NCBI GenBank assembly: GCA_946965045.2 | Contig: OX337233.1 | Coordinates: forward strand, 806,001 to 870,000 | Length of the DNA: 64,000 nucleotides | Source: Epithemia pelagica | Taxonomy: Eukaryota > Protista > Bacillariophyta | Reading direction: 5' to 3' | Part shown: positions 48,260 through 58,376 of the stretch, piece after piece | Layout of the letters: the number at the start of each line of letters is the position of its first letter | Numbering within the stretch: position 1 is the stretch's first letter | Notes under the pieces: model-generated | Database searches by the model: none | What the model was told of the DNA's origin: nothing | Seen by the model: the letters and a program-made list of their open reading frames with translations, nothing else | Made by a program: the position numbers and the translations under genes

Positions 48260-50954
48260 CTACGAATAGTATACAGGTGCCCCTCCATTGCCCAGTAGAT
48301 TGCGGAGACTGTACTTGTCACTTTTCTTGACATCCAAGTACGTGTTCAGGACACGTCGGGTAATGAGGTAGACTTGTTCCACATTGTCGGGTGTCAATTT
48401 ACCATCCGGATTAATCGTTGGAAAGGCCACGAGAATCATTTGTTTGAGGACAGTGGGATTGATTTGGGCATTGTATCCGGCATCCCGAATGTAATCGGCA
48501 AACCATTGTCCCAACAATCGATGCGATTCGGCAATATCTTCGGGATCGGCCTCCCGCGATTGATTCATCAAGTTGCAAATATCTTCAATCTTGTCTTGAT
48601 AGTCGGGATCCGCCAAGCGGGCCAAGACTTGGTCGTTCCATCGTTTGCCAAATTCAAACGTGGCCCGGGCATTTTGGCGCAATTCGTCCAAGGCTTCCTT
48701 ATCTTCTTCATAGCTTCGCACACCGGGCAACAACATGTGTTTGCCTTGTTTGGCGCGTTCAATATTCAACAAATGCAAGGCTTCCGGATCGACAAAGGAT
48801 CCATTCAAGGCCCGTTGGACCAATTCTTCGTCTTCTCCTTCCAAATACTTCTTTTCTTGCGGCACCTTGGGGGCCTTTTTGGAGGCACCCAAACCCGGTT
48901 TGGACATGAGCGGGTAATTGATAATGGAGGCCAAGACACTGACGCCAATCCCAATCCAAATGGCGGGATTGGTCCCAATGTAATCGGCCAACAATCCAAA
49001 GATCCACGGAGAAATGGCCATGCCCAAATTCATGACGGTATTGTTCAAGCCTTGCACATACCCAATCTTTTCTTCTGGCGCAATCAAATCCAACATGGGA
49101 CCGGTCGACAATTGACTCACCACGGTAAGGGGGAACCCCAAATACATGACAATGATAAAAAATGCATACATGCCCGTCGTGGCAGGCTGTCGAATATGAG
49201 TATATATAATGCATACAAACGAGAGGATCCCAAACGACACACGGCGTGAGCAAGATACAAACAAAGCAGAGAAAGGATATAACATCCAAAAAGAGCATGA
49301 GAATCTTAAAACCACCAACAACACAAACAAACAAACATTGAAAACGTACGCCATTGCCAATAAACAAGAGTGCCATGGTCAAAATGGCCGTGGCCAAATT
49401 GCCAAAGACGCATCCACCGGCGGCGCCAATCCAGGCAAAGACGCGGGGGGTAATCAAGGTTCCGGGAATGACCATGAGAGCGACCAAGACGGACAACCAT
49501 TGATAGGCCGAAATGCTCATGATTGGATCTTCCGGTGGTTCGGCATTGACAAAATCCAAATGATATTGTTCCAAGGCCAGGGGAGACAAGCACAGGGGAA
49601 ACAAGGCCGTCGATCCGACATTGTCGGCAAAGGCGCCCATGACAATATGCCACAAGGTCATATTGTCCAAGTGTTCGGGACGAGGAATGACAGTTTCATC
49701 ATCGTCATCATCATTGTCATTTTTCTTGGTGGCGTCGCCGTCTTCTGCCAGGTTACTTTTGGGAAGCGTTTCGTCGGCTTCTTCCGTGGCTTGTTCGACG
49801 TGTTCCACATCCTCCTCCTTGGTGGGAAGCAATCGTTCGTATTCGTCATCATCTTGAGCGAGTTTGTCATTGGCAATGGGTGTATACGTGGCACCCGGTC
49901 GTGGTTCAATCAAGTACCAGATATTAAGGACAAAGGATACCAGGACAAAGGCGGCGCCCAAAAAGAGGGGGGTAAACAAGCCGGAATCATTCATGAGAAT
50001 GGCAAAAATGCCACCGCCGGAATTGCCCAAGACATAATATCCAACAATGACGGACAGGGCATCTTGTTTTTCCTTTTTGGTCGTAAAGACATCGCCGACA
50101 TAGGCCATGGCCACGGGTAGGGTACCCTTGAACAAGCCGGCGGCAAAACTGGCGGCACAAAAGCCCCAAAAGGTTTTGCGAGCGGCATACATAACGACGG
50201 ATCCAATACAGGCACCGACGGAACTCACTTGAATAATGTGTTTGCGTCCCAGGCGATCGGACCAATTGCCGGTAAAAATCGAGGCAATGGCCACTCCCAT
50301 GAGACTGGACAGGGGCAAAAAGTACGTGGCGGAATTAAAATCAAAAGGATCGGTATCGGGAAAGGAATCCTCATTGGCATCGGGCGTTGCCATGATGGCA
50401 AAATTGGGATTGAGCAATTTGGTATTAATGGCCGAGGCCACGACATTGAATTGCAAGGCCCACAAACTGTATTTCAGAGCCGTTTCGTCCGTGGCCAAGT
50501 CTTGTCCCCGTTGGACGCCTTTCTGACCCCAATTCTGGGGATGCCACAAGGCGTGCAAACTACTCGAGGCCTTGGCCCACAGCGAATCGCGCTCTTTTGT
50601 AGTGTCTTGAAATTCGTCCAAGGGAACTTCTTCGGCTTCACCATCATGGTCGACTGTTTCCACCTCGGCCGCTGATGGATCATCGTCCTTGGTGGGTGGA
50701 TCTTGTGGAGGAACAGCTGCTGGCACCACGGGTTCCTCATCATTCGCCTCCTCAGTTTGTGGTGGAGCAGCACCCGCAGCATCGACTTCGACACTTTCTT
50801 CGGCCATGGCGACATCGGTCGCCGTGGGTTCGACGCCTTGATTGTTTGGATTGTCGCCATGACTGGTATCGTCAATGTCGACACCGGTCGAAAAGACAAT
50901 TTCGGTAGCGTCTTCCTCTTGCACCACTGGTTGCGGCTGTGGCTGTTCCGCCAT
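48260..50954 (-). CDS. Major facilitator superfamily transporter with long C-terminal cytosolic extension (2 exons)
   Basis: Exons 50954-49350 and 49186-48260; phase-0 intron GTACGT...ACAG of 163 nt. MFS motif A GNWSDRLGRKHII, PVAMAYVGDVF, DLIAPEEKIGYVQGLNN, IFGLLAD; multiple TM helices. Confidence 0.9.
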
Positions 50955-51071
50955 GGTGTTTGTGGTTGTCACTGTTGTTTTATTTGCTAGTGTGGAACCG
51001 ATTCACCTTTTTCTCTCTCTCTCTCTCGTTTTCGTAGTCAACTGTCGAGTTGGTCGAGCACGACCGCTGAT

Positions 51072-51087
51072 CCTCGGGGGGGATGTA
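51072..51087. repeat. Left end of Crypton: direct repeat CCTCGG + inverted arm GGGGGATGTA
   Basis: Read directly: tcctcggggg ggatgta at 51071-51087. Confidence 0.85.
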
Positions 51088-51567
51088 TTCCCCCCGCACG
51101 TGCCTAGTTACTATAGCCCGAATTTTTACTGTACTCAAATTTTCTTTTTAGTGTATTTTAAGTAAAATTTTCGGTCGTGGGAAAAACCGAAACAATGAGG
51201 CGAACGGAAACCGTCACAAAATGAGCCGAAATAGACCACGAAAAACAAACCGCGTGCAACAACAGCAACAACAATAGCAACAAGAACAACAATAGCAACA
51301 AGAACAAACAACAGCAGAGCCAGGACAAAGACAATGTAACAAAAAGGACATCACAACCAACCAGACCAAAGGATAAAGGCGAGACATGAAGACCAACCAA
51401 AGAGAGACACAAGGCGAGACAAGTCGACAACCAAAGAAGGAAGGCAAGGCAGAGGAAGGCTAAGACAAAGGCAAGACAAAGCAAAAACAACAGATAGCAC
51501 CAGAAAAAACAGAAATCGAAGAGAGCCATTAAGAGACAACAATCAACAAGGAATAGGGAGGGTGAAT

Positions 51568-51633
51568 GCATTCGAGGAGGACCAAAATCAAAGAGAAACG
51601 GCATTCGAGAAGGACCAAAATCAAAGAGAAATC
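51568..51633. repeat. 33-bp tandem duplication inside the element
   Basis: gcattcgag(g/a)aggaccaaaatcaaagagaaa(cg/tc) x2. Confidence 0.85.
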
Positions 51634-51828
51634 AAGATTAAGGTTAGACATGCCTTTGGAAAGAACACAGCAATCAAGAAGGAACAGCAAAAGACAAACT
51701 TACCTATGGATTTGTAGCGAACATCACAAAGAGCTCAAGCATCAACCTGTTAAGACGAAGATGGTGAGAGAATAGCAATAGACAGACAGCAAATCAAACA
51801 AAGTAACTTACCCATTTCATTCTGTCAT

Positions 51829-54613
51829 TCAGTAGTGACGACCCCCGTGGTTGTAATGGTAGTGATCACCGCCATGTCGGTGATAGCCACTGTGGTGGTT
51901 GCCGTGGTTAGGCCACGAAGAAGATGCAGGATACTGACGTGGAGGCGGTGGTGGCGAGGAATGATGGTGATAATGATGGACCGTTGGGCCATTCACACGG
52001 GACGAAGGAACAGGAGGAGGTGGCGAATATGATCGAGGAGGGGGTGGCGGAGGGGAAGGCCCGCGGTAATGATTGTAACGGGGTCCATACGATGGTGGAG
52101 GTGGAGGAGGAGTCCACCCACCATGGTTACGATCGCTCGAATGGTAGGAGTACGATCGAGAATGAGGGGGAGGAGGAGGAGGCGACCGATTGTAGTGGTT
52201 GTCGCGTTGGTGGTAGTGACTGCGACTCTCGTTGCGCTGGTAGTTGTGGTGGTAGTTGTCGTGTTGGTGATGAGAGTGTGTGGTGTTTGTTGTATTGTTG
52301 TTGTCCCATGCAGAAGGAGGAAGGAGCGGGGGTGGTTCGTCCTCGTCGTCTTTTTTCGCGGCTACTGGTGGAGATTTTTTCTTAGGTTCCTCTGAAACGA
52401 GAACAGTAGAGAGGTAAGATACAGAAGTAGTAACAACATGCATCAGTCAGACAACAACGTACCTTTTTTGGTTTGTTCTTCGTCATCGGATGGCGTGTAC
52501 CAATGGGCCGTCACTGCCTTCTGTTTCGAGTGGTCCGTCACTTCTTGATACTCAAAGTTGATCTTTTCACCCTTGTGGCGGCCGTTATTCGTTGCAAGAG
52601 GTTGAGGAACGCCCGAGTTCGCAACCGTGGTGATCCCAGTTCTCCGAGCGGAACGACCAGTAAAGTTGCCGGTTCCTTCGAAACCACAACGCTTAGCCAA
52701 CTCTTTCGTGTTGCGCGCAGCGAAATTTTCGCCCAACTTTCCACCAGGACGCATGCCAGTCAATGGATTAATCTTTGTTTTCGACATATCAGGAACAAGA
52801 TCCGTCCAGGCATGGTGAGTCGATCCGTCAGCGCGTGTGGCAATTACTTTGGCGGGTGCTTCACGAAGGAAGAAGAGCCCTTTCCAACCCGGCGGGTGGG
52901 CAACTCTACGGTACTCCATGACCAGTTTGTAGGTGCTCCATGGATCCTTGGGGTTTTCCACAATCATGTTCCCTTTGCAATCCACTGCGCGCCGGAACGG
53001 AGGGTTGACAAGAGTCAATTTTACATTCTTATGGTGACCGGAGTCAAGAGGGATGATCGCCGCCTTACCAGCGAGATCGCCGTGCAAATCATCTAGACTT
53101 TTAACAAATAGAAAGTCTGTTACTTTTGCTAAATGCATCTGAGTAGAAACAACAAGCAGAGGTGAGAAGCGTGTGATCCATACGACAATCCAACGGATCG
53201 TGGACGTACCTCTAGACATCGAAAACTACAGTCACGGCAGACTTTGTAGAACACCATCATGAGGAGATCCTTGTAAATTTCGAACAGACGAAGTGGAGGA
53301 CTCGCATACTTTTGCATGGACTTCTCGTCGTTGAGGCAAACTCCGGCTCGTTTGGGAAGTCGGCCAAACTCAGAACGGACGGTGGCGGTTTCCGACCACA
53401 AGTTCTCCAAGTAGGCATGGTACGAGCCCTCCCCTTTGAGGTCCGACTGCGTGATCACGACTCCATTGGCTCGCAGGATGAAAAAGATGTGATTGAGCAC
53501 TTTGCCGGTCGTGTTTGGCTGGTAGTGATACTTGGGGTCGTGGGGATCGTGCTCCCCCTTTTTGTACCCAGCCATGCGCAGATTCATGCAGAAAATCATG
53601 CAGAGAGAATTCAACAACCTAAGTTTGCCACGAGTAATACCCCCCCCCCCCCCCCCGAGAGCAACAAAAAGCTTGGGCACCTTCAAATTTTCGCCCTTTT
53701 CAGTATCAGGATCAATGATGGGCGCCGCGAGTCCTCTATAGTGTTTATGGCGACGGAGAATGTCCAAGAATCGTTTGAAAGAGTCCGCCTTGGCCTTGTT
53801 GTACGACTCGGAGTTCTGCGAGAGCTTGCGAACGTCGTACTTGTGGTTCTCGTCTTCGTATACATCCTCGCTGATGCGAGCAAAGGTGTTCCAGTACTGA
53901 ATACTGTCCTTGGTGTGTGGCACATCCACGGGGAGTTTTTGATACTCCGCAATCATCAGCTCGCCATCCTCATTTTCGGTCACATGTCTCTGCTTGACGC
54001 ATGCCATGGCAATGGTTCGTGTATCGAGTGGAGATGGGGGACCAATGGCAGCAGGAGGATGATGTTCGTCCAGTGGTTCCTCGTCGTCCGTATCTTCCAA
54101 CAGGTGGTACCAATCGTCTTCATCTTCATCGTCATCGTCCCTGAAAGAAAGAACGACATTCGTGTGAGACACAACAATCATACAAAAGAAGGGAGTTTCT
54201 CATCCTCAACTTACTCCGGAAGATAAGGAACAAGAGGAGGAAGACGATCGTCTTCTTCGTCGTCGTCTTCCTCGTCGAAAAGGGAAGGACGATCCTTCTT
54301 CCCATTGGTGCTGAAAAAGAGGAGGCCATTCTTGTCAGACACAACAATCATACAGAAAAGAAGACGGCAATGATGATCCAACAACTTACCTTTCTTTCGG
54401 GTGAAGATGGTGACGAGGAGGAGGAGGGACGTTTTCCTTCCCATTGTCGACGGTGGGAGGAGGAAGTTTCTTCTTCGGATGAACCTTCTTTGTAACCTTC
54501 CGAACAGGAGGGCGAGGAATGTCGTCTTCCTCTTCATCGCGGTACCTCTTCTTGGCTGCTGCAGCAGCAGCTTGGCGTTTAGATCGACGGGGGCGGAGCG
54601 GAGTCTTGGCCAT
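51829..54613 (-). CDS. Tyrosine recombinase (Crypton/DUF3504-like), 5 exons, ~829 aa
   Basis: Exons 54613-54390, 54310-54215, 54140-53210, 53138-52463, 52391-51829; introns of 79, 74, 71 and 71 nt, all GT-AG and phase-consistent; total 830 codons. Motifs: YQPNTTGKVLNHIF (core-binding), SFRCLEMH (Arg I), HHKN (Lys), FTGRSARRTGIT (Arg II), GRH, INFEY (Tyr nucleophile). Confidence 0.85.
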
Positions 54614-55325
54614 GGTCTTTCGTTTCCTGCAATGCGATGCAAAAATGGCAATGGAAGAAAAAGTGTGAGGTTTGTTTTGCACGGTAAACACAGCAGCGAA
54701 TTCAAAAATGGATGAGGCGGGGCACGCGCGCAGGAAGAAAAAGGAAGGAAGGAAGAGTCGCAGGAAGGAAGACTGGTCGACAATGACGAAAAACAACAAT
54801 CAAACTTACATTTTCTCCAACTTGGCAAGGTACCAAGGATCGGAATGAACACTGTGAGCGTTGGTGTCGCTCCCAGTGCATTCATCCATCTTTGGAACGA
54901 AGGTACCGTCCAAAGGTACGAAGGCGAGTGAGATGGCGTCCGACGAGGATGAACACAACGATAAAGACGACGAAGACGATGAACACGACGACAAAGACGA
55001 CGAAGAAGACGCAATGGAGATAGGAGAAGACACAATGCCACGATGTCCCTTGTCCTTGGAAGGCATGGGGCTGACAACGGCCGTAGGAGGTTTCGTCATG
55101 GTCAGGTCTTCCTTTTTCCAAACGAATGATGAAAACACAAAACACAACGCCCAACACACAAATGCGGCCACTTTATCTGCTTGGAAACTCGTAGCTCCTA
55201 AGTAACCTCTAAGTATATTTGTGAGTCCTAATTAGATTGTTCCTAATTGTCGTAAGTAATCTTTCTTTACAATGGTACTGTTTTCCTATGTATTCCAAAC
55301 AATTAGAAAACTCAACGTACTTTAT

Positions 55326-55341
55326 TACATCCCCCCCTCGG
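55326..55341. repeat. Right end of Crypton: inverted arm TACATCCCCC + direct repeat CCTCGG
   Basis: Read directly: tacat ccccccc tcgg at 55326-55341. Confidence 0.85.
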
Positions 55342-55355
55342 ACGCAACGGACGCC

Positions 55356-55558
55356 TATGACATTTGCTGCTCGGAACGCTTCTCGTCGGGGGCTCGTCGG
55401 GGCGTAACTCCTCGAAGGGCAATAGGTCCTCGTCGTGGACTGCCCCTATATCCGCTGACGCGGGGGACATTCCACTCCTCGGACCTATTGCCCTTCTCGT
55501 CGTTACGCCCCTCCTCGTGCCTCCCTCCTCGAAGCTACTCCTCGCAGCAAATGTAATA
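55356..55558 (-). other. ~200-nt rod-like hairpin with nine tandem G.A internal loops
   Basis: Perfect stems ACATTTGCTGC/GCAGCAAATGT, GCTTC/GAAGC, GGGGCGTAAC/GTTACGCCCC, GAAGGGCAATAGGTCC/GGACCTATTGCCCTTC, GTGGA/TCCAC, CCGC/GCGG, separated by TC/TC mismatches (GA/GA on the minus strand). Confidence 0.85.
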
Positions 55559-58376
55559 TTACCACAAAGACCTCTAGGAAGATTGCTAGAGTGTCTCTTG
55601 GACGACTTGGAATGCCTGTGGAATCGTCCCAGCTGCTGCTCCCGACAGTGTGTGTTGTGGAGTGTGTGTGTTTCAGCAGGGTCCCTGTTCTGAAACCACC
55701 ACCACCACCACCACCACAAAAAAGATTTTCGTCGTCTTCCAAAATTTGGCCACGGTCTCGTTGTCGTCTTCGGGTTTCTGTGTTTGTGTAGTGTGTTGAT
55801 GTTGGGGGTATCTTTTGAGCACATTTTTGTGGGGGAGTGCGGCGCGCGCCGTTGGGGGTTGGGGTGTGGGTGTGGTGTCTGTCGTTGTACGTAGTGTACA
55901 ATAGTAGAGTCCCGTTTCTGTCGGGGTTCTCGTTTCTTGATCTTGGGTCGCACAAGGCTGTCTCGCGTGCAAGACGCCGGGCGAGTAGTGGACAAACGGT
56001 CGGACCACACATTCATCTCTCTCGTTGTTGCTCCGTCGACGCCGACAACCATGGAACCACACCAACGTTCCACCACCACCAACAACAACAACAACTCTTA
56101 TAACGAGGGCCACAAAGCAGATTCTCGTATGGAGACCAGAGAGAGAGAATCATTCGAACGAAAAAACTCGAGCTGTTGTGTGGGTTGTGAACCCCAGCAC
56201 AACAAGGCGAACAAAGAAACCCCAACACAAAAAGAGAGTGATTTCTCGACCCACACGAATACGAATCAAACGTTTGCCAACCACACAGTGACAGCTAGTA
56301 TTTCCTACATATATGTATGTGGCACAGTATCCAGAACCGGTAGAGTCCACATGACGTGGGTTTTTCCAGTCTGCCTCGAATGGACCATTGCTCGGGCGAT
56401 TCTTGCGGTGCTCCGCAGAGCTATTTCTATTAATTTGTAGAGGAGCCAAGTTCTGTTTCGTTTCCAAACAGAGGCACGACGGGTTACGCCTCTGCAATAG
56501 TACCAGTATGCTACAGCATCCGGTAACTATTACTCCACCAGATGGACCTTTGGTCAGATTACCTCCGTCTTGTAGTACTAGATGGCCTTGTTGTCGTTCC
56601 GTAACTCTGGCACAGAAAATGTTTGTTTTATTGCTTCCCCATGCAACGTTTCCCTTGTCGACGAAATCTGCACAACCACTAGTACGGCTAGATCACAAAC
56701 AGCAAGCCACTTTGCCAGCAAGCAAGCTCGTAAAACACACACAAGGGTCCAGCAACGACAGCAACATCGCGCCACCTACCATCGCATAAGGCTCCATACC
56801 ACCATCATACATTCTTCTCGTCTTTATTTTATCACTCGAACCTACACGTTATTCTTCTTCCTTGTCTCAACTGGCAATCGATGAACGTCGGTGACTCCGA
56901 ATACACTTACTGTTCCCGGCCTTGTTGTTTTCAGATTTTCGCGCTTGTCGTTACCACGGATCCTTATCCCGCCGTTTGGTTTCTGATTTTTCGTCGTGTT
57001 CTTTTGTAGCCACCGTACACATGAGACATGTTCGCCGAGTAAACGACGTTCGGTAAAGCAGCACAAGGATGATACGTGTTGTACACGAGGGCGTCCTTCT
57101 TGTTGATCGTGTTGGATCGCCCGTGTCCTTCCTGTTACGCGAAAATAGCTGTCTTGTGTGGCAGCCCAGGCCTGTTGCATTGGAATTCCTGCCTTCACTG
57201 GTTTGTTGGTTGCATGTCAAGAAAGTTGGACACACAAGGGACCAAATACCAGACACTTTTCGGTGGTATTTGCTCCCCTGAAAGTAAGGGTAACCTGATT
57301 ACATGTACCATTTTCCAGTCAAGTCTACGGAGTTGCATGTGCTCGGGGTGACTGGGGGCAATCACACGTGTCCATTCAAATCGAGAGATAATTATTTGAT
57401 GCTCGGTTGACATGGAGGCAGTCACAAATGCCTCGAGATATGTCTCTTACGGATAAGGGCATGCCGATGAAAGCAACACTAGGGCTTGCCAAAGGAAAGA
57501 CTCTTATTTTGATACCTGCCATGCACTCGTATTCCTGAGGTCATTGTGCAATTCACCACTTGTCCTTTGATTCATGAACAGAATGTGTTCATGTATTGAA
57601 ACTTTGTTTTGGTCGCCCTGGTCGTTGCCCCGGACATTTGTTCTTGTGAAGAGACCATGATCAGTGATAGCCAACTGGATACTTGACTTCGGAGTTCGGA
57701 GAAAGCAAAAACGTACAACCATTCTTCCGTATCAACACAACATGATGACGTTGTCTAGTCACTCACCGATCAAAGTTCCAAGTGAAGACCCCCTTGCCCC
57801 GTGGTTCATCACAAATAAATCTTTGTTCTCTACTAGTTCCGAATTACAGATTGCCGAAAGACCCCAATCCCCCAAAACCAAAAACACGACATAAAATATA
57901 TCATATGACTTTTGATATGGCTGCGGTACTCGGGAGGCATAAATCAGGTGAGCTCCCTACCAGGTACAATGTCCCATTACATTTCCAGCTGAGTCATTCC
58001 AGAATGCCCAAGACTAGACAAAACTGAGATGTCATCTCTACTCGCTAGTTCGAAAGCCATTCGATGACATAATAGAGCTAACAGCCTATTCTTGTTCCAT
58101 CAAGGAGAAAAGAAGCATGATTAGTTTTCTATCACAATTTCACAAGCAGCATATTCGCAACACAAAAGACTACCGTATAGTGTGCTGATCTCTAGAAACG
58201 ACTCCAACTCAGGTATTTTCGTTGTGGATTTCGGAAATGCTACGATAGAAATATTATCTGCGGAAACTTACCTACTTTTGTATCCTATCTTATCCATGCA
58301 GGTGAAATTGAATGCCGACGATATGCTGAAAAACAGAAGGCTGTATGATATCTGCGAAGGCCATGTCAAGGTCAGC

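Follow-up and report, generated by a model that had tools for sequence, protein, structure and literature searches.

The window, that is, the whole 64-kb stretch of DNA that was analysed, carries at positions 51060-55560 one copy of a young, autonomous and recently mobile Crypton-type DNA transposon of a diatom. This 4.5-kb unit holds one gene of six in-frame exons on the minus strand, encoding 930 aa; in the orientation of the gene, the 5′ end of the element, which bears a long palindrome, lies at 55560 and the 3′ end at 51060. The element and the parts of its gene are as follows:

51060..55560, minus strand: whole mobile element, 4,501 bp, delimited by empty-site contigs and the ends of sister copies
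54810..55099, minus strand: exon 1, with its start ATG at 55099, in frame across a GT-AG intron; its reading frame is open in each of the three intact copies
54390..54626, minus strand: exon 2, a basic region with an alternative start codon (gene model)
54215..54310, minus strand: exon 3, an acidic region (gene model)
53210..54140, minus strand: exon 4, N-terminal domain and box I arginine R515 (...SFRCLE), from the alignment of homologues
52463..53138, minus strand: exon 5, predicted catalytic core (K555, R680, R683, H706, Y715), from alignment, profile search and structure model
51829..52391, minus strand: exon 6, a Pro/His/Tyr-rich low-complexity tail and the stop codon (gene model)
51745..51809, minus strand: 65-nt GT..AG intron in the 3′ UTR

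The gene is complete, as a sequence-only reading of the same DNA had held, but the five exons of that reading become six; five fit if the ATG in exon 2 is the start, and exon 1 is possibly 5′ UTR should translation begin there. Homologues align without gaps across the exon 4/5 junction and also bear tails similar in composition to exon 6. One contig from run X4 lacks the 3′ UTR intron, indicating transcription and splicing of the family.

The encoded protein has the full catalytic set R515, K555, R680, R683, H706 and Y715. In the alignment, the box I arginine R515 is conserved, R680 and R683 are found at 90% or more in relatives, and R705, H706 and Y715 are invariant; the position of the box II histidine is occupied by an arginine (R680) in at least 90% of relatives. 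A profile search of the PDB matched only tyrosine recombinases (XerA, Xer, Int), in register. The exon-5 model (pLDDT 87.9) gave Z = 6.9 to Cre and 5.9 to the Crypton-derived QRICH1, and a Foldseek search with a full-core model of the Entomoneis homologue placed Cre and its Tre variant in the top 13 positions at probability 1.00; the matches of the exon-5 model alone were weak (E about 2). Tn1549 Int was also present among the fold matches. Neighbours in the Atlas carry PF00589 and DUF3504 and include oomycete and diatom clusters. Pfam searches of exon pieces, antisense ORFs and ten homologues returned nothing except one weak PF00589 match in a relative, and a single-sequence search of the PDB gave nothing useful; by Pfam, no reverse transcriptase, RNase H, methyltransferase or other transposase was found in the exons or antisense ORFs. 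We conclude that the gene product is a predicted Cre-like tyrosine recombinase, with catalysis likewise predicted from the alignment and the models. The sequence-only reading had called the locus an intron-containing tyrosine-recombinase transposon of the Crypton kind that lacks reverse transcriptase, and both this assignment and the recombinase fold agree with our results.

The extent of the element was taken as 51060-55560 because an empty-site joint and two intact copies give identical ends. In contigs of three public runs (X1-X3) from the same organism, 51059 is joined straight to 55561, and the allele without the element is 4,501 bp shorter; the joint, which has a 2-nt ambiguity (AC), reads ...GGTCGAGC-AC-CACAAAG.... 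The full-length copies L006 and L007, which are 97.4-97.8% identical to the window copy, cease matching at exactly the same end positions, in unrelated flanks. RNA splicing was considered as a source of the 51059>55561 joint and rejected, given that none of the possible registers offers a GT-AG pair and that the joint occurs in assemblies with contigs over 400 kb. The empty allele could represent the ancestral state rather than an excision product; no circle junction or backward-directed joint was seen among the assembled contigs, which seldom retain rare forms. Both inverted repeats and LTRs are absent from the true termini.

Elements of this family measure 4,023-5,218 bp. Three intact copies, with different flanks, are about 0.5-2% apart, and their coding sequences are open throughout (930, 935 and 927 aa); L001 and L003 are truncated, dead copies. 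The dN/dS between intact copies is 0.22-0.28 (about 0.25), the recombinase protein being under purifying selection, and haplotypes or samples differ in whether they carry the insertion. Given this polymorphism, the three intact copies in different flanks and the dN/dS value, the element looks intact and is very likely active, in keeping with the potential activity that had been proposed for it.

The junctions and the features near them are, from the 5′ to the 3′ end:

55561..55565, minus strand: target-derived pentamer GTGGT, adjoining the element outside its 5′ junction
55553..55560, minus strand: 5′ terminal octamer AATATTAC, which with GTCGT gives the 13-bp quasi-palindromic core GTCGTAATATTAC
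55356..55558, minus strand: 203-bp imperfect palindrome (rod hairpin) with regular tandem G.A mismatches, part of the element, from fold and covariation
55326..55341, no strand assigned: inner arm of a 12-bp subterminal inverted repeat (55326-55337), then a C-GA-G unit; the right arm and hexamer of the sequence-only reading
51072..51087, no strand assigned: partner arm of the 12-bp subterminal inverted repeat (51076-51087); the left hexamer and arm of that reading
51060..51064, minus strand: element-borne terminal pentamer GTCGT (ACGAC on the plus strand), the 3′ crossover repeat

The 3′ pentamer is GTCG(T/C) in all five copies of the window family (GTCGC in L006) and GTAG(T/A) in other lineages (GTAGA in L008); the third base thus goes with the lineage, which assigns the pentamer to the element. 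On the opposite side, the 5′ flank ends in GTNGT in 8/8 independent insertions from three lineages, the N differs among copies within one lineage, and the flank pentamer occurs once in the empty allele. The target consensus from the eight insertions is approximately GTNGT-NN-WCNAC, a short palindrome, with G, T, G and T at positions -5, -4, -2 and -1 and A and C at +6 and +7 in every case, and C at +4 in six. The third pentamer base is target-derived at the 5′ junction and element-derived at the 3′ junction, and two copies differ in the final base of the 3′ pentamer; together these observations place the exchange point at approximately the fourth or fifth base. As the third bases differ in young copies, GTNGT and GT(C/A)GT do not constitute a duplication, and the short terminal repeats are, as judged from sequence, Crypton-style crossover repeats rather than a target-site duplication. 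When the ends are joined on paper, the same core is rebuilt in every lineage, a 13-bp quasi-palindrome of the general form GT(C/A)GT-A(A/G)T-WYTAC that reads GTAGTAATACTAC, a perfect palindrome, in L005 and GTAGTAGTTCTAC in L002 and L004.

The 203-bp palindrome is missing from the empty allele. Its DNA fold has an energy of -66.9 kcal/mol (z = -11.5), and among its 63 consensus pairs 15 have compensatory changes and almost none are broken. The hexamer CCTCGG is present at 51072-51077 and 55336-55341, and the 10-bp inverted arms GGGGGATGTA (51078-87) and TACATCCCCC (55326-35) adjoin the hexamers, exactly as had been described from the sequence; the 10-mer arm has only two perfect matches in the window. 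These motifs are not due to chance, since they are conserved in diverged relatives and both arms changed jointly in L005, to TACCTAGGCAAC and GTTGCCTAGGTA. With the ends joined, the hexamer, arms and palindrome make up one continuous rod-like imperfect palindrome of ~290 nt, in which 20 junction-spanning pairs are kept in 158/160 cells, six of the pairs being compensatory; one-sided stem changes retain G.T pairs, and the positions of the tandem G.A mismatches are invariant while the stems co-vary. Although the region is otherwise palindromic, CGASRAG motifs are confined to its sense strand, where 9-11 of them are present, and this strand also folds better than the antisense one in 8/8 copies. 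In every lineage the divergence of the palindrome keeps pace with that of the gene, and the palindrome pairs with the opposite end of the element. The more distant relatives L011 and L010 have such hairpins too, upstream of the gene; the 3′ end of L011 was looked for and not located. Neither solo hairpins nor extra ends were found in the window or in eleven other loci, the sole Rfam match, to a long-hairpin miRNA, was below threshold (37 bits vs a gathering score of 137), and Cryptons with terminal palindromes were not found in a search of the literature. We consider the hexamers, arms and palindrome most likely to be accessory binding or architectural DNA, that is, putative cis elements.

Taken as a whole, these results are quite probably best explained by a Crypton-type transposon that uses a circle with a 13-bp core and a single point of exchange. 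The element would leave or enter as a circle, in which the 3′ GT(C/A)GT would abut the 5′ A(A/G)T(A/T)(T/C)TAC to form the quasi-palindromic core; the recombinase could then exchange strands of this core with those of a similar-looking site in the genome, which would create imperfect direct repeats of 5 bp but no true duplication. The hexamers, arms and palindrome would form the long rod only once the ends are joined, and may in this way mark the joined form and position the core. Several points count against this model. A circle junction is missing from the assembled contigs, and the empty allele could be ancestral; the half-sites lie 1 bp further apart in the joined ends (a 13-bp core) than in the targets (12 bp); certain identity at the exchange point amounts to only 1-2 bp, an unusually small amount for a tyrosine recombinase; and arginine (R680) takes the place of the box II histidine across the whole family.

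The ~290-nt rod hairpin could itself be the substrate, either as a cruciform from a supercoiled circle or as a single strand, with recognition through the tandem G.A mismatches and exchange at a fixed point ~30 nt from the base; such a system might resemble integron attC or CTX-phage attP with bacterial tyrosine recombinases. We regard this as unlikely, if conceivable. The 15 + 6 compensatory pairs around invariant mismatch positions, the G.T pairs kept after one-sided changes, the polarity of CGASRAG together with the better fold of the sense strand, and the upstream hairpins of L011 and L010 all argue for it, and the sequence has a conserved hairpin structure, invariant unpaired positions and strand polarity, as attC does, with folding in vivo hypothetical. 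The single-stranded and cruciform forms are purely hypothetical, however; moreover, the arms of a palindrome can co-vary by templated repair without function, the strand-polar motif may instead represent protein-binding repeats arrayed in duplex DNA, and the target is ordinary duplex DNA.

The sequence-only reading had placed the element at 51072-55341, flanked by the CCTCGG hexamers, which would serve as the strand-exchange spacer in a loxP/dif-like circle junction, TACATCCCCC-CCTCGG-GGGGGATGTA. The motifs exist, are conserved and, taken alone, have the geometry of a tyrosine-recombinase core, but recombination between them is contradicted as the mode of insertion and very improbable. The empty site predicted on this basis, ...GCTGAT-CCTCGG-ACGCAA..., was not the one observed, as the empty allele joins 51059 to 55561; no joint of the 51077>55342 type occurs in the contigs of any run, and exchange takes place at 51059/60 and 55560/61. 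The hexamers and arms are internal to the mobile unit, set back from its true ends by 12 bp (the left pair, at the 3′ end) and 219 bp, and these extra 12 and 219 bp, with identical outer ends, are common to all full-length copies; the hexamer self-pairs as a C-GA-G unit of the long rod. The empty-site alleles and further copies that this reading suggested looking for do exist, in runs X1-X3 and as L006 and L007, although the empty sites are not at the hexamers and the copies end 12 bp and 219 bp beyond them. Likewise, the joined ends rebuild a palindromic site, in the form of the rod with its 13-bp core and not of a small loxP/dif-like site.

That the two junctions share only 2-bp identity (AC/GT) could suggest a domesticated host gene, or movement by another transposase class with a 2-bp duplication; this is hardly credible for a multicopy, polymorphic sequence in unrelated flanks, whose true termini lack inverted repeats, whose pentamer differs at its third base in young copies, hence no duplication, and whose sole gene is a tyrosine recombinase under purifying selection. 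The view that the Crypton merely adjoins the palindrome, itself an independent repeat (a MITE or a preferred target), arose from a first alignment in which homology between copies ran past 55341, possibly as a shared target, and it can be dismissed as next to impossible because the empty allele lacks the palindrome as well, to which may be added that no solo copy was found in the window or in eleven other loci and that the palindrome diverges alongside the gene and pairs with the element's opposite end.

The circle-core transposon can be compared with described Cryptons and with other tyrosine-recombinase systems. Cryptons are said to have neither terminal inverted repeats nor long direct repeats, and the short terminal direct repeats of CryptonS elements, TATGG in most of them, are taken as crossover substrates; CryptonS-1_PTri of Phaeodactylum tricornutum is 4,671 bp long with the termini CTGTAAG (Kojima & Jurka 2011, PMC3212892). 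As far as the relevant passages of that paper describe them, these elements resemble ours in having a tyrosine recombinase only, with no reverse transcriptase, a low copy number and short crossover repeats, and CryptonS-1_PTri also in its diatom host and its size (4,023-5,218 bp here). Crypton traits found here comprise the catalytic residues, with arginine for the box II histidine, the lack of reverse transcriptase, short imperfect repeats and mobility; the subterminal inverted repeat and terminal palindrome are extras beyond Crypton-type short direct repeats. The termini, compared by description only, are GTNGT here and not TATGG or CTGTAAG, and those passages of PMC3212892 make no mention of a long palindrome, subterminal inverted repeats or a palindromic target.

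The element shares with Cre-loxP a two-domain tyrosine-recombinase fold closest to that of Cre, the R...K...R...H...Y set and a palindromic joined-end core. Unlike Cre-loxP, Flp-FRT and XerCD-dif, it has half-sites of ~5 bp, 1-2 bp of certain identity in place of an identical 6-8-bp spacer, a degenerate target with no second copy of the site, an arginine for the box II histidine and a ~290-bp accessory palindrome around the core. The integrases of Tn916, Tn1549 and CTnDOT work through a circular intermediate, accept degenerate targets and require hardly any overlap identity, or none at all; degenerate targets and scant overlap identity recur here, where the circle would be analogous, but those hosts are bacterial, and a coupling-sequence heteroduplex would yield two junction types whereas one type was found in 8/8 insertions. 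Integron attC and CTX-phage attP are folded-strand substrates of bacterial tyrosine recombinases, and they share with the rod an imperfect hairpin, structure conserved over sequence, invariant unpaired bases, strand polarity and a crossover near one stem end; the hairpin here is several times longer, in a eukaryotic host, with regular tandem G.A mismatches instead of extrahelical bases and a hypothetical single-stranded stage. DIRS1-type elements have reverse transcriptase, RNase H and methyltransferase genes and an RNA intermediate; as in these elements, the repeats make sense only when joined (circular), but the reverse transcriptase and RNase H that accompany the recombinase of DIRS1-type and DIRS/Ngaro elements are absent.

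To our knowledge, no class of eukaryotic DNA transposons is less well understood than the Cryptons, whose ends are hard to define, and we know of no Crypton recombination site characterised so far. This locus combines an apparently intact recombinase with base-exact ends from an empty allele and sister copies, a target motif from eight insertions and a co-varying cis structure across the joined ends, and it could thus provide a concrete test system, a Cre-like enzyme for which donor junction and target are both defined. The 26-bp hexamer site would probably not work as a tool, because exchange happens elsewhere. The results also raise the question of why a eukaryotic tyrosine recombinase retains a strand-polar, G.A-mismatched hairpin. 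There is a slim chance that this diatom Crypton clade recombines via a folded ~290-nt rod hairpin that exists only at the joined ends; if true, integron attC or CTX-phage recombination would have its first counterpart among eukaryotes.

The CCTCGG hexamers that the sequence-only reading took as the ends of a Crypton at 51072-55341 are located as described, at 51072-77 and 55336-41, next to the 10-mer GGGGGATGTA (51078-87) and its complement (55326-35), the only two perfect matches to this 10-mer in the 64-kb window. A protein search returned relatives from one ENA assembly only, and eleven related loci (L001-L011) were obtained by fetching the matches in that assembly. In nucleotide comparisons, similarity between independent copies continues beyond both hexamers, by ~12-20 bp on the left and, on the right, by as much as 220 bp, where it crosses a 203-bp palindrome (55356-55558). 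We also placed contigs from four public runs of this organism on the window; in three of the four, 51059 runs straight into 55561 within one contig, with the intervening 4,501 bp missing and two bases (AC) assignable to either side. This joint was rejected as an RNA splice, because GT-AG is impossible in every register and the joint is present in assemblies with contigs >400 kb. Allelic differences close by in the empty-site contig (a 21-bp indel at 50946, several SNPs) identify it as another haplotype rather than an artefact. Over 4.5 kb, two copies in unrelated flanks, L006 and L007, share 97.4-97.8% identity with the window copy, and both stop matching it at the same two bases, which delimits the mobile unit:

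51060-55560, gene on the minus strand: mobile unit, from the empty-allele joint and the ends of L006 and L007

The ends previously placed at 51072 and 55341 are thus superseded, and the observed empty allele is not the one predicted from excision between the hexamers. Two further copies of the window lineage (L001 and L003) are 5′-truncated and lie within an 11-kb segmental duplication (97% identity). They start mid-palindrome, between ~101-bp direct repeats (L001:4667-4767 and L001:9126-9226, with the same arrangement in L003) that derive from a host tandem-repeat region; they may stem from a break in the palindrome or from aberrant insertion.

Between the hexamers lies a multi-exon minus-strand gene with tyrosine-recombinase-like motifs (...SFRCLE..., HHKN, GRSARRTG and GRHKGEKINFEY). 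The gene model has six exons with canonical GT-AG introns and a 930-aa product; the five coding exons proposed earlier hold if the exon-2 ATG is the start, leaving exon 1 as UTR. Longer homologues, including a transcriptome-derived 1,027-aa protein of the diatom Entomoneis paludosa and one from Cylindrotheca fusiformis, align across the exon 4/5 junction without a gap. In a 40-sequence alignment (spliced numbering), R705, H706 and Y715 are invariant, and K555, R680 and R683 occur at at least 90%. R515, the box I arginine, is also conserved. Matches of the alignment profile in the PDB were tyrosine recombinases only (XerA, an integrase, a XerC-like protein, Tn1549 Int and XerD); their scores are weak (E 0.03-1.9), yet RxxR...H...Y lines up exactly. 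A model of exon 5 (pLDDT 87.9) aligned with the Cre catalytic domain (Z 6.9), XerA (Z 6.2) and QRICH1 (Z 5.9), the last belonging to the DUF3504 genes for which Kojima and Jurka propose a Crypton origin (PMC3212892); all eight matches with Z of at least 2 are tyrosine-recombinase folds. For a full-core model of the Entomoneis homologue, Cre and its Tre variant fill the top 13 Foldseek matches at probability 1.00, followed by QRICH1, XerH, XerA, Tn1549 Int and Flp. Atlas neighbours bear PF00589 and DUF3504. Coding exon 4 contains a slippage-prone 17-base poly-C tract (53640-53656, encoding Gly6); in sister copies and read contigs it is 9 bases shorter, with the frame kept. A ~185-aa Pro/His/Tyr-rich low-complexity tail (exon 6, 51829-52391) closes the recombinase, and the C-termini of homologues P0007 and P0032 have similar composition, likewise ending in His/Tyr runs.

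The 5′ junctions of eight young copies, in gene orientation as are all junction sequences here, were as follows.

5′ flank end at each insertion
Window: GTGGT
L006: GTGGT
L007: GTTGT
L002: GTAGT
L008: GTAGT
L004: GTCGT
L009: GTCGT
L005: GTTGT

The element starts directly after this pentamer with A(A/G)T(A/T)(T/C)TAC and ends in GGTCGT in the window lineage or GGTAGT in the others, apart from two copies in which the final base differs. The pentamers are not a target-site duplication, because the 3′ pentamer is characteristic of its lineage, the one at the 5′ junction varies between copies of a single lineage, and their third bases differ in 6/8 copies. They are instead the partner sequences of a crossover, in line with the proposal made for the terminal repeats of Cryptons (PMC3212892). 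Reconstructed targets have A at +6 and C at +7 in all eight cases and C at +4 in six, so that the target is a short palindrome, about GTNGT-NN-WCNAC. The joined ends form a 13-bp quasi-palindrome, perfect in L005, with 5/6 positions pairing in L002 and L004 and 4/6 in the window lineage. Strand exchange must occur around base four or five of the pentamer, and not in the hexamers.

The element shows all the defining features of a Crypton that could be tested, and the earlier classification stands: a tyrosine-recombinase fold, short crossover repeats and mobile copies, with no RT or any other domain found anywhere in the 51060-55560 unit. Its GTNGT and GT(C/A)GT termini differ from those that PMC3212892 gives in its account of CryptonS, namely TATGG for the majority of members and CTGTAAG for a 4,671-bp Phaeodactylum element. 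Literature searches turned up no Cryptons described as having a terminal palindrome.

We folded the joined ends (the final 45 nt followed by the initial 262 nt) of all eight copies, and the hairpin continues across the junction as a rod of ~290 nt closed by a 12-bp subterminal inverted repeat. At the junction, the 3′ CGT pairs with GCG, CAGCGG with CCGTTG and GGA with TCC, and the GA dinucleotides of the two CCGAGG hexamers (CCTCGG on the plus strand) lie opposite one another, forming a tandem G.A mismatch. Of twenty pairs that span the junction, six are compensatory, one of them at the terminal pentamer's third base (C:G in the window lineage, A:T elsewhere); pairing is kept in 158/160 cells. 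Within the palindrome (fold z = -11.5), 15/63 pairs are compensatory; unpaired positions are invariant and lie within the motif CGASRAG, present in 9-11 copies on the sense strand but absent from the antisense strand, and the sense strand folds better in 8/8 copies. Rather than a loxP-like spacer or a duplication, CCGAGG is a further C-GA-G unit of the rod, which explains how it can be both a direct and an inverted repeat. Such hairpins also lie upstream of the gene in more distant relatives (~40% protein identity): L011 has one with z = -11.8 and a GTCGT|AAATCTAC start, and that of L010 is smaller. That the recombinase recognises the rod itself as folded DNA, a cruciform or single-strand hairpin, seems to us improbable; our best guess is that the rod is accessory or architectural DNA marking the joined form. 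A sub-threshold Rfam match to the long-hairpin plant miRNA precursor MIR1858 (55360-55555, minus strand; 37 bits against a gathering score of 137) probably reflects just a common hairpin shape.

Coding sequences are intact in the window copy (930 aa), L006 (935 aa) and L007 (927 aa); those of the truncated copies are interrupted by 3 and 7 premature stops. L006 and L007 diverge by 0.5%, dN/dS among intact copies is 0.22-0.28, and in one contig from run X4 a 65-nt intron of the 3′ UTR is spliced out, indicating transcription. Together with the presence/absence polymorphism, these features show a recently active family, in keeping with the earlier suggestion of potential activity. Part of the 3′ UTR (51230-51700) is purine-rich with AAC/CAA repeats and a 33-bp tandem duplication (51568-51631); its very high read depth and spurious joints point to low-complexity sequence common to other loci. 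Several copies lie near DDE_Tnp_4, DDE_Tnp_1 and copia-type RVT_2/rve genes, a setting suggestive of TE-rich neighbourhoods:

L002:241-792: mobile-element sequence
L003:12480-13016: mobile-element sequence
L004:12406-13149: mobile-element sequence
L006:1-3963: mobile-element sequence

Beside the window copy, a 737-aa ORF (48759-50972) looks like a membrane transporter, and on the empty-site haplotype the 21-bp insertion at 50946 is in frame within its N-terminal Gln/Pro repeat. Because the Crypton sits ~90 bp upstream of the start of this ORF, it may affect the promoter on one haplotype.
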